From positions 186,001 to 250,000 of the forward strand of contig JAHLWZ010000004.1 of the NCBI GenBank assembly GCA_020536535.1: DNA of 64,000 nt, in the 5' to 3' direction. The DNA comes from Pelomyxa schiedti (Eukaryota; Protista; Evosea). This document shows, in pieces, positions 15,501 to 20,099 of the stretch (the stretch's first letter is position 1; each line of letters begins with the position of its first letter). Under the pieces are notes generated by a model. That model had not been told where the DNA came from. It searched no databases and saw only the letters and a list, made by a program, of their open reading frames with translations. The position numbers and the translations under genes were made by a program.

Positions 15501-17414
15501 TACGCCATGGGATATTTCTCAGATCCATCCAATGAATTTGACAAAGTTCTATTTGATACTTTGGTGGAGCTTTATGAGAAAGTGGGCAATACTATAGCTA
15601 CACAATATGCCGGATCCCAATTAGCTAATACAGTCAAAACCTACACACGGGTAATTAATGACTCTAGACGCTAAATCTTATACATGCAGGCCTCAGCTTC
15701 CTCATTTGGGCGAGATCTTTTTCAGACAATGAAGAGATACTACAGCAATTCGTTTACAGACACTGAGAAGCAGCATAGTATAAATGTCTTCTTGGGAATG
15801 TACATTCCATTGCAACACCTGGAACCACTTTGGAATTTTCACACCGATTATTACCTTCACAACACTCCTCAATCCGATCCCACGAACTTATTGTGGTACG
15901 TGCGTCTATTGTATTTAGAAAACTCTGATAGTGGACTTTTCAAAAAAGTACAACAGATTGGTGGAGTGAACCTCTAGCATATTTTACTGCAACCCCAGTT
16001 GAATACCTTAATTGTTGCACCCCCCATTTATGGATTTTCATCGCACTTTCAACAATGCACTCATCATTCCTTCTCAGTTTCGATGATCCCTAATTAATTT
16101 TAAAAAAGGGAGAGCACCCTGAAGACCCCCCTTCCTCAAACAGCACCACTACAAGTGGTCGTCGGAGTACCAGACAACCTGCAGTCACCCCAATCCGCCC
16201 TCCTGTGAGACAATGCTTTGAGTACACGAGCCTGTCATCTTATACAATATTTGAGGACTACCTGACAACTGCTACCTGGTTACCCAGGAGCTTGGACGTG
16301 AGCACTTTTCTAAAAGACATTCCCATGCAACAGCATAAGACAAGTGAAACCAATGCTTTGCTAGCTCTTCCAAAAACCAAATCACTTGGCTTTGCTCGGG
16401 ATTTGCGTGCCACACAGCAATATATGAGGTAACCCACTCCCCCATATCATTTTCCAGTAGTCATATAGATATCTCATTTAGGCTATTTGATGTATTCATC
16501 AAAATGATGCCGTCACAATATACCCGTACCCGCTCTTTTGCCGCTGAGCCAACCATTACAATAGACCGGACACACTTCCGAAATAGGCTCCGGCAGTCCC
16601 TAAGTGCCACCGAGATAAGCAAAGCCACAAGCGTTTTGAAGCTGAACGATACAGACAACGTCCGATTCTACAAGAAGTAAACGCAGCCTCTACCAATTGC
16701 TCCTCCTAACCTCCCCTCCTACCTGATTTCCGCAGGTACCTCTCGCTGTTTGCCCTGCCGCCTCCCCCTACCACCCTCCGCTCCTCCGCGGCCTCGTCGG
16801 GCCGCGGCCGCCAAGACGCGGCCAGCGGCACCGCGGCCCAAGGCGGCCTCGCGCACCAGCGCTCCCGCATCGCCCTGCTGTGGTGGCTCCCCAAGCTGCT
16901 CCAGCACACCGGGGACAGCTCCCACCCCGGCGGCGCCTCGAGCCGCGGGGGCCCCGGCGACCAGGCCGCGGGCGGCAGCAGCAGCAAGGACGACGACGAC
17001 GACGACGCCGCGGCCGACGACGCGCAGCAGGGGGGCATGAGCCACGCCCAGCGGCGCGAGGAGCAGCAGCAGTGGTACACGGCCTACGTCGGGCACGCCT
17101 GGGCGCCGGTGGTCCCGACGCCGCCGAGCGCCACGCCCAAGTCGCAGCGGCGCTCCGTGGCGCTGTGCGCGGCCAGCGCGGAGATACAGCAGCGGCACCA
17201 CTGGCTGTTCAACAGGAACGAGCGCAAGCAGATGTGCGGGTGGGACTTTGTGGGGCCGCTGCCTGCCCCGGCCATTGCGATCCTGCCGCCGACTCCTCAC
17301 ACGATGGAGGTGTATGCCTCGCATGTGGGAATGTGCCTCCCGGGACTGCCTCCCCTGAACAAAGTGGACTCGTTGTTTGTCCCACTCCCCAGCAGCATCA
17401 AACCAAAGAACTGA
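12586..17414 (+). CDS. FIG4: FIG4/SAC3 phosphoinositide 5-phosphatase (SAC domain); multi-exon, 3' end tentative
   Basis: [60 protein letters not shown], catalytic [16 protein letters not shown] (15388-15411). An intron gtaaac..ctaac..ccgcag near 16676-16736 joins the GC-rich last exon ending at 17414; otherwise the stop is at 16680. Confidence 0.85.
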
Positions 17415-17614: not shown

Positions 17615-18950
17615 ATGATGGCAGCAAGGACAGCAAGCCCCAACTTGGATGTTGCAAGGTGTGCTTACAAGTGGTTTCGTCAGGCCGACAGAGTTTTGTT
17701 AGTTGCCGGTATGTTTCGCTTCCAGTACTGTTTTGGCTTGGTACCACTTGATGATGCTTCAGAGACAGTTTTAACTTTTTTTTTTTTGTAATTTTGTTTC
17801 TTAAGGTGCTGGAATGTCTATTGAGTGTGGGATTGACTATGGAGACAAGACGATTTTTGCTCAGAGATACCCTGGCCTACTGCAGTTTGGATTGACTTGC
17901 TCGTGGCAGGGAATATCTCTAATGTTTGATCCTGATGTGCCACCAAAACTATGCTGGGGTTACTATAGGTTTGTATAGTCATTATACATATTTCATTCTT
18001 AATACACTTTGAAGTGACCACGCGAATTGGATGAGGTATGAAGTTCAACCACATGATGGCTACAGGCAGCTGTGGGAAATGTGTAAAAACAAAGACTACT
18101 TTGTGTATACCAGCAATGCAGACGGTTGCTTTGAGAAGTCAGGTTATTCAACCGAGCCAAGGCACAGCAATGCTAACTCTAGACAGGATTTGACCCGGCG
18201 AAAATATATTTACCCCAGGTATGACGACAGTTCCCAAGTAAGAACCATTTACACCTGAGTGTAGGGCGACTTTGCCTACCTACAATGCTCAAAGCCATGT
18301 GCAAGAGATTCGTTCTATCCAGCTAAACCATACTTCGACAAAATGATACCAAATATTGACAAATGCATGCGCTCCTTTTATGTCAAAGAGTATAACTTTA
18401 CCCGTAGCTACGCAAATGCTACGAGATGATTCTCTTGTACCCCGATGCCCCAAATGTAACTCCATGCTTCGAATAAATGGTCGCGGAGACCACACATTCA
18501 TTCATGAGCCATATCTTCCGATACAATTAAAATTGATTGAGTGGATGAAAGAGAGCATTGCACAAAGAAAGCGTGTATTAGTAATCGAATTTGGGGTGGG
18601 CAGTGGTTCCACTCCCATTGTTACAAGGTAATCCTGCATTTAAATAGAACCATCACTCAAACACCACAAGGTACCCCATTGAATCAATGCTACGAGACTG
18701 CGGTGCCAATGGAAAATTCATTCGAGTAAACCTTACAGAAGCAGAACTTCCTGACGGGATTACCGGCCTATCCGTGAAGGCAGGAACCCGTTCCTTTTTG
18801 CAGGACTTCTATGAGGCCAACCTGCACCCTCCCACAACCGCTGAGGAAGAAGAAGCCGAAAATAATGCCCTTATGCATCAGGCCACTCTTCCCACTGCCT
18901 CAACAATTTCTTGTTCGTGGGAAAAGATTCTCATTCAACTTCGTAATTAA
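17615..18950 (+). CDS. Class M sirtuin (SirTM-like), predicted mono-ADP-ribosyltransferase; multi-exon
   Basis: Spliced motifs VLLVAGAGMS, YFVYTSNADGCFEKSGF, IYLPQGDFAYLQCSKPC, VPRCPKCNSMLRINGRG, VLVIEFGVGSGSTPIVTRYP follow the SirTM order and spacing (TTNADNAF, HIQGEYILQQCSQHC, IPRCPKCDAPMEVN, LYLEIGIG..TP). Confidence 0.85.
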
Positions 18951-19011: not shown

Positions 19012-19784
19012 TCAGTGTGCACCCTCAGTCGGTTGCACTTCCACTCCACGATGTGACAATGGTGTCATTATGAAGGAACTGGCACGGCCAAATCCACGCC
19101 TCAAAGGAGCATAGATACGCGAGAATATGGGGACGTTGGCAGCAATTCCAGAGAGACTCCACTCGTCCACAATGTGCCTCACAACATTCCTCTTTGCTGG
19201 ATGAATGGCGGAGCCGGCTTGAGTCAGACCTTCAGCAGGAAGTGTACTAGTAGTCGTTGTAGTAACTCCGGTGGCAGTGGGAGAAACAGCCCCGAGCTTA
19301 GAAGCAGCACCGATTCCAGAGGCCGGCATTGCCGCAGTTGTAGTGGGAACGAATTCTATGGTTGTATGAACCCTCATTCTCTGGTGCAAGAAAGGCAACA
19401 ACTTGGGCTTGCCACTGAATTCCCACTCAACGAGCCATACGTCATTGTTGTTGCCCTTTGGTCCCGCATGCCAGATAACCACGGCAACATCTTTCCAGAA
19501 AACAGGAATGCTCATAAACTTAAGAGCTCATTAATATCAATGCAACACTACTATACAATAAATAGTTTGGAATAAATGGAGATTTGTAGTTGTTCTTTTT
19601 TTGGGTTTATCATATATAAGTTTACCTGTGTTTCGATTTCAGCCCTCCCCTTTGCTATCATCATGGGATCCTCAAACTCCACATACGGCGAAAAATACTC
19701 TTCAAGCAACACCTTTTGTTGAACCTTGGAACCGCTGTACAACCCCATTATCTTCTGAACCGCCTCGAGTCGATTGGAATCCAT
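19012..19784 (-). CDS. Putative NTF2/SnoaL-like fold protein
   Basis: YFSPYVEFEDPMMIAKGRAEIETQ then WEFSG..VVRHIVDEWSL..VPIFSRIYAPLRR resembles SnoaL/DUF2358-type F-x-DP and terminal H-x-D-x-W patterns. ATG 19784; two ORFs (19551..19802, 19012..19515) joined by intron(s). Confidence 0.5.
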
Positions 19785-20099
19785 CGTGCACGTAGAGCCC
19801 ACTCAAAACTTCACGTACTTCTCGGTAATTATCTCCTTTTCTCACACCCAAGTGGCTACATAATGGTGACTAACCACCACGAAAAATCGTTTCGAAATAT
19901 TTTTTTTTTTATGATCTTTGAACTTTAGACTGAGAGACACATTCACAGGGCTACATAGTGGCCTTGTCAGTGCGGCTCAGCGCTTTGGCTGGTGTCTGTT
20001 AGCTTGAACTCACTCGTTCCCGTGAATGGCCATAATTAGTTGGCTAGTTGGCTGGCTTGGTGCCATCCCGCATCGAGATTCCCTGAATCCGTCGGCCAT

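Follow-up and report, generated by a model that had tools for sequence, protein, structure and literature searches.

A stand-alone sirtuin gene of the SirTM lineage and an unlinked zinc-macrodomain gene in Pelomyxa schiedti

Class M sirtuins (SirTMs) owe their class name to linkage or fusion with a zinc-macrodomain (Zn-Macro). Within the 64-kb stretch of Pelomyxa schiedti DNA that was analysed here (the window), a gene was found which resembles these enzymes and carries Gln in place of the catalytic His, and which has no macrodomain beside it. A sequence-only reading had taken this to suggest an uncoupled or rewired ADP-ribosylation system in a protist. The question is, therefore, whether the gene belongs to the SirTM lineage and, if so, whether the amoeba lacks the enzyme that would erase the mark.

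Gene model and family membership of the sirtuin

The sirtuin gene occupies positions 17615-18950 of the window on the plus strand and comprises seven exons and six introns, the frames and phases of which were checked by script. For its analysis, a SirTM-family profile was made from an alignment of 22 homologues, and the gene was searched exon by exon, using the open frame of each exon. The features are as follows (profile positions refer to this SirTM-family profile).

Exon 1, 17615-17708, plus strand: translation start and N-terminal helix, extending as far as the first G of the NAD-binding motif GAG; profile positions 7-27; donor GTATGT.
Exon 2, 17806-17968, plus strand: NAD-binding motif (G)AGMS..G.DY and the helices after it; 45.5 bits, profile positions 27-81; sole PDB match 8RSN, residues 335-384.
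Exon 3, 18015-18142, plus strand: TSNAD motif with the Asn codon at 18115-18117; 56 bits, profile positions 83-129; sole PDB match 5A3A.
Exon 4, 18187-18218, plus strand: 32 nt, the last codon being Gln CAG at 18216-18218; profile positions 124-135.
Exon 5, 18265-18364, plus strand: G-D of QGD and the first zinc Cys pair (codons 18286-18288 and 18298-18300); 35.6 bits, profile positions 136-169; sole PDB match 8RSN, residues 441-473.
Intron 5, 18365-18407, plus strand: 43 nt, GC-AG.
Exon 6, 18408-18627, plus strand: second zinc Cys pair CPKC, Arg codon at 18482-18484 and pyrophosphate loop GVGSGSTP at 18593-18616; 79 bits, profile positions 169-241; PDB matches 8RSN (E = 2e-4, residues 475-541) and 5A3A.
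Exon 7, 18671-18950, plus strand: RVN adenine-ribose motif, acidic tail, C-terminal Trp motif SWEKILIQLRN and TAA at 18948-18950; 27 bits, profile positions 240-325.

The joined coding sequence measures 1017 nt (338 codons plus TAA), with consistent phases and not a single in-frame stop in the exons. The seven exons fell in order on profile positions 7-325 and together scored about 255 bits, a collinear sequence score that is far beyond chance. Introns 1 to 6 are 97, 46, 44, 46, 43 and 43 nt long, five of them being of the GT-AG and one (intron 5) of the GC-AG type; the sequence-only reading had counted at least five. The seven-exon model, including its splicing and expression, is a prediction from homology. 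At the GC-AG intron, exon 5 stops at residue 473 of 8RSN and exon 6 begins at residue 475, corresponding to one split codon, and a paralogue on scaffold C187 runs across the same point uninterrupted, in one exon with equal spacing. GC-AG introns have a share of 1.59% in P. schiedti, the 52.4-Mb genome of which was assembled into 5337 scaffolds with 7.4 introns per gene (PMC8887013).

At the catalytic site, the HG of sirtuins is changed to QG. The sequence at 18210-18220 reads TTA CCC CAG / GT..., and exon 5 opens with GGC GAC at 18265, so that CAG (18216-18218) and GGC (18265-18267) are joined across a GT-AG intron to give the product L-P-Q-G-D; sequence and exon phases thus confirmed the motif that had been proposed. 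QG was also revealed in the orthologues. In the environmental eukaryotic contig L037, which holds the closest relative found in genomic DNA (exons 35-69% identical to those of the P. schiedti sirtuin), an intron lies at the identical place, directly after the Gln codon. The possibility that splicing brings back a His was checked in a relative, where a Trinity transcript of Mastigella eilhardi, representing spliced mRNA, was found to read R-P-Q-G-D. With QG kept both in L037 and in the Mastigella mRNA, restoration of a His through splicing is very unlikely. Four public runs of one sample contain the P. schiedti locus; all of them gave unspliced DNA contigs and are probably the source of the assembly itself.

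A Pfam scan of the single exons yielded no SIR2 match at an E-value of 10 or better, the Pfam and NCBIfam scans being uninformative on account of the short exons and of no SirTM-specific model being returned. PDB searches with exons 2, 3, 5 and 6, on the other hand, matched only 8RSN (Mfs1 of Fusarium oxysporum) and/or 5A3A (SirTM of S. pyogenes). Searching exon 6 against 1.84 billion representative proteins gave 60 matches, of which those inspected were all of the SirTM type; the full-length ones carry T-P-Q-G-D/E, with one H-G exception. When the family profile was compared with structures, E-values of 8.8e-75 for 8RSN and 1.4e-46 for 5A3A were obtained, as against 5.9e-8 for the best ordinary sirtuin. 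In line with this, when the Amoeba proteus member was modelled with AlphaFold (pLDDT 87) and the model was searched with Foldseek, 8RSN and 5A3A ranked as the closest folds, with Hst2, SIRT2 and SIRT3 following at a clear distance.

The sirtuin core motifs, namely (G)AGMS across exons 1 and 2, TSNAD in exon 3, C-x3-C in exon 5 and C-x2-C in exon 6, are present and fall on invariant or near-invariant columns of the family alignment. In the 5A3A alignments, chain numbers differ by 10 from those published for SpySirTM. On this basis, the counterpart of N118 is the Asn encoded at 18115-18117, that of Q137 is the Gln encoded at 18216-18218, and that of R192 is the Arg of NGRGD, encoded at 18482-18484. 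Mutation of each of the three abolishes the activity of SpySirTM (PMC4518038). The pyrophosphate loop, GVGSGSTP, departs from GVGx[NT]TP, the form specific to the class, by one extra residue and by Ser for Asn/Thr. The altered loop recurs in Mastigella (GVGLRSTP) and L037 (GVGLHSTP); the other P. schiedti paralogues are free of the insertion, the C187 copy being canonical. By sequence, motifs and fold, the gene is assigned to the SirTM lineage, as had been proposed; the linkage or fusion to a zinc-macrodomain, to which the class owes its name, is absent from it.

Macrodomains in the window and elsewhere in the genome

Upstream lies a phosphatase gene with SacI homology (FIG4-like), which ends at 17414, and the sirtuin ATG follows its stop codon after 201 nt. 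Exon 1 is devoid of a long presequence and lines up with the N-termini of unfused homologues, in agreement with the claim that the sirtuin is unfused. Downstream, a gene at 19012-19802 on the minus strand converges on the sirtuin gene and lies about 60 nt past its end. It had been called NTF2-like, for which no match in Pfam or PDB was obtained; the FIG4-like identity of the upstream gene and the statement that neither neighbour is a macrodomain were upheld. The last exon of the SAC-domain gene (16700-17414) is very GC-rich and of low complexity, with runs of Ala, Pro, Arg and Gln, and differs sharply from the sirtuin gene, 200 nt away, which has a GC content of about 43%. Along the window, GC content ranges from about 37% to 66% per kilobase.

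For the detection of macrodomains, the macro halves of 12 fused homologues were combined into a zinc-macrodomain profile, which gave no signal over the whole 64-kb window. The nearest macrodomain on the sirtuin scaffold (locus L003, C4:179600-180330) lies 23 kb upstream of the sirtuin gene, about 5.7 kb before the window start. It is of the MacroD type (NAAN...GGGG-VDGAIH) and was rejected as a partner because of this canonical GGGG-VDGAIH loop.

Searching the genome for a zinc-macrodomain, GcvH and LplA, as suggested for checking the earlier claim, retrieved one locus of each. The zinc-macrodomain gene resides on scaffold C505 at 101057-101892 on the minus strand (loci L012/L013), with four exons covering positions 85-267 of the zinc-macrodomain profile. 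Its zinc loop reads L-G-C-F-A-P-T-H-R-C-I-D-N-V-I-H, with an intact Cx4HxC, the diagnostic motif of Ariza et al. (PMC11490716). The best curated match of the C505 macrodomain (LGCFAPTHRCIDNVIH) is NF003163, a protein-ADP-ribose hydrolase, and its last exon stops at profile position 262 of 265, so that it ends like the stand-alone enzymes. A SirTM domain, as expected of a hidden Mfs1, was not found within 10 kb downstream. The N-terminal part of the gene adjoins a 100-N assembly gap (C505:101955-102054), which hides the N-terminal helical bundle. Of the macrodomain loci retrieved from the genome, which include several canonical ones, only that on C505 carries a zinc loop. The claim that there is no macrodomain partner, thus, stands for the window and falls for the genome.

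Stand-alone zinc-macrodomain proteins were also observed in records of two other eukaryotes, Histomonas meleagridis and Adineta ricciae (P0101 and P0094). From these, split SirTM/Zn-Macro systems may be more widespread among eukaryotes.

The SirTM profile search of the genome revealed two further Q-G sirtuin genes. One (C301:10291-11506, L039) is largely a single open frame and almost intron-less; the other is located at C187:58051-59222 (L040). No macrodomain was detected near these paralogues, in the 10-kb stretches C301:4000-13999 and C187:50000-59999. Hence, P. schiedti has three putative SirTM-type writers and one putative Zn-Macro eraser that was found, all unlinked. A short partial copy of the first exon of the C187 paralogue was noticed at C187:813-968. 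A further sirtuin-like match, C976:8458-9619 (L026), fits the SirTM profile and was rejected as a fourth paralogue because it is of the His type, reading V-H-G-N. It resembles the environmental H-G protein P0056 and might represent a sister group of class M in which the His is kept.

Both GcvH (C761) and LplA (C690) are unlinked to the sirtuin gene. They are described as housekeeping genes, the products of which bear organelle-targeting signals (PMC8887013). A dedicated GcvH-L and a dedicated ligase, as in the extended SirTM operon, were not found in the genome, where the single GcvH and the single LplA locus were the only ones retrieved.

Relatives of the sirtuin and interpretation of the split arrangement

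Unfused Q-G homologues are common in protist transcriptomes; they were found in Mastigella eilhardi, Amoeba proteus (351 aa), Apiculatamorpha spiralis, Gymnochlora sp. and many environmental eukaryotes. Together with the three copies in the P. schiedti genome, this means that the arrangement is not peculiar to P. schiedti. Fused homologues occur in Entamoeba (P0047, named EdiMfs1 by Ariza et al.), Dermamoeba, Leptophrys, a diatom and a chytrid, and in the case of two bacterial homologues (P0025, P0053) a Macro gene lies directly upstream. In a maximum-likelihood tree of the exon 6 region, the P. schiedti sirtuin groups with L037 and Mastigella with a support of 98/88, and this clade is set apart from the one containing the characterised SirTMs. 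Fused and unfused members are intermixed in the tree with weak support, and its deeper branches are unresolved. The exon-by-exon preference of profile and PDB matches for SirTM structures agrees with the expected grouping away from ordinary deacylases. No Zn-Macro was found within 8 kb of the L037 orthologue.

A C-terminal tail motif, D/S-W-x2-hydrophobic-x3-L-R/K (window positions 18890-18947), marks one subgroup of SirTM-type proteins, to which the P. schiedti sirtuin, the majority of the unfused protist members and a part of the fused ones belong. It was seen at the C-termini of P0071, P0036, P0061, P0002, P0059 and P0028 and is shared with Mastigella, L037, Amoeba proteus and others, and the AlphaFold model predicts it as a confident terminal helix. 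All SirTMs characterised so far, namely those of Entamoeba, fungi and bacteria, lack the motif. A literature search retrieved no description of unfused eukaryotic SirTMs and none tying SirTMs to amoebae; the reviews mention only Mfs1.

Considering all of these data, we regard it as probable that the locus is an intact nuclear gene for a 338-residue stand-alone class M sirtuin which would mono-ADP-ribosylate a protein target, with the mark being removed in trans by the C505 Zn-Macro. The sirtuin would bind NAD+, release nicotinamide and form the O-alkylamidate intermediate. As it has no general-base His, it would be unable to finish deacylation and would instead move mono-ADP-ribose to a nearby acidic residue of its protein target. 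The mark would probably be erased by the C505 zinc-macrodomain hydrolase, a pairing for which co-occurrence is the evidence. Writer and eraser would, thus, be encoded by separate, unlinked genes where Entamoeba and fungi have them fused in Mfs1, and the writer would be present as three paralogues. As the sirtuin has no N-terminal extension and both GcvH and the lipoate ligase are reported to be organelle-targeted, a cytosolic, non-GcvH target appears more likely; the localisation itself is predicted from the sequence.

In eukaryotic genes, absence of linkage is the normal state. This bears on the uncoupled or rewired system of the sequence-only reading, in which the SirTM would act without a dedicated zinc-macrodomain; the mark would then be either irreversible or removed by other hydrolases, such as a canonical MacroD. 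The lack of a Zn-Macro in the window and near any of the three paralogues would fit such a system, as would its lack around the L037 orthologue, the several canonical macrodomains in the genome, and the clade with Mastigella and L037, which is separate from the characterised SirTMs and shows the altered pyrophosphate loop. However, missing linkage carries little weight in a eukaryote, and the genome still encodes a Zn-Macro whose catalytic zinc loop is intact and which belongs to a subfamily that in every described case co-occurs with a SirTM (PMC11490716). We therefore consider an uncoupled system unlikely, and the notion of an eraser-less arrangement found no support. Somewhat less probable still is a sirtuin that is non-catalytic or differently catalytic, such as an NAD+/ADP-ribose sensor or an NADase, or that is an unexpressed, decaying copy. 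The altered loop, the presence of three paralogues and the fact that the public runs containing the locus are unspliced DNA contigs only would be compatible with this. Such a reading is, however, at odds with seven open exons flanked by good splice sites and with the retention of the catalytic Asn, Gln and Arg and of the four zinc Cys, and the same features are kept in the Mastigella transcript and in L037, with conserved intron positions.

That an ordinary deacylase sirtuin, or bacterial contamination, was misread as a SirTM is scarcely conceivable. Only the shared sirtuin fold would speak for it. The catalytic motif is QG and not HG, none of the exons matches Pfam SIR2, and the E-values of the family profile are better for the SirTM structures than for other sirtuins by some 40 orders of magnitude or more. 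Contamination is contradicted by the six spliceosomal introns, the eukaryotic neighbours and the scaffold, which is part of the amoeba assembly as published. We conclude that the P. schiedti system is most probably a split form of the known system in which the writer has been multiplied, and not an eraser-less one. More speculatively, a protist-wide SirTM branch, marked by the Trp-motif tail and, in Archamoebae, by the altered loop, might have been freed from one-to-one coupling with a zinc-macrodomain and might ADP-ribosylate new, non-GcvH targets in the cytosol. In Pelomyxa, three diverged writers might then share one eraser in the oxygen/redox stress response of this anaerobe; we put this extension forward tentatively and hold it to be rather doubtful.

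Comparison with known SirTM systems

The eukaryotic SirTMs described so far are all macrodomain fusions (Mfs1). In P. schiedti the system is naturally split into three predicted writers and one predicted eraser, implying that physical coupling is not obligatory, which makes it possible to ask which writer pairs with the eraser and which non-GcvH targets are modified. The SirTM family, known from pathogens, is thereby extended to anaerobic protists that live freely. As chemistry and parts are those of the known system and it is the architecture that is new, the advance is an incremental one.

Mfs1 of Entamoeba, fungi and Phytophthora, represented by 8RSN, is the best PDB match both for the P. 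schiedti exons and for the family profile. It is alike in sirtuin lineage, in QG for HG, in the catalytic Asn and Arg and in the zinc module. Entamoeba and Pelomyxa are both Archamoebae. In Mfs1, a zinc-macrodomain precedes the sirtuin in the same polypeptide, whereas the P. schiedti sirtuin begins about 20 residues before GAG and the Zn-Macro is encoded by a separate gene on another scaffold. In addition, the P. schiedti sirtuin has a longer C-terminal tail with the Trp motif, and its pyrophosphate loop is longer by one residue.

With the SirTMs of bacterial operons (S. pyogenes, 5A3A; S. aureus), the P. schiedti sirtuin has in common the fold and the equivalents of N118, Q137 and R192, and both would be expected to be mono-ADP-ribosyltransferases without deacylase activity. 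The bacterial genes adjoin a Zn-Macro gene, as also seen for P0025 and P0053, and the target in the extended operon is a dedicated lipoylated GcvH-L, accompanied by LplA2; in P. schiedti, by contrast, GcvH and LplA occur only in their housekeeping, organelle-targeted form, and there is no linkage.

In architecture, the gene is like the unfused QG sirtuins of other protists, which stand alone, measure about 300-430 residues, exhibit the same motifs and in most cases share the C-terminal Trp motif. The latter are known only as uncharacterised entries in databases, and the transcriptome entries among them come without genomic context, which the P. schiedti locus supplies.
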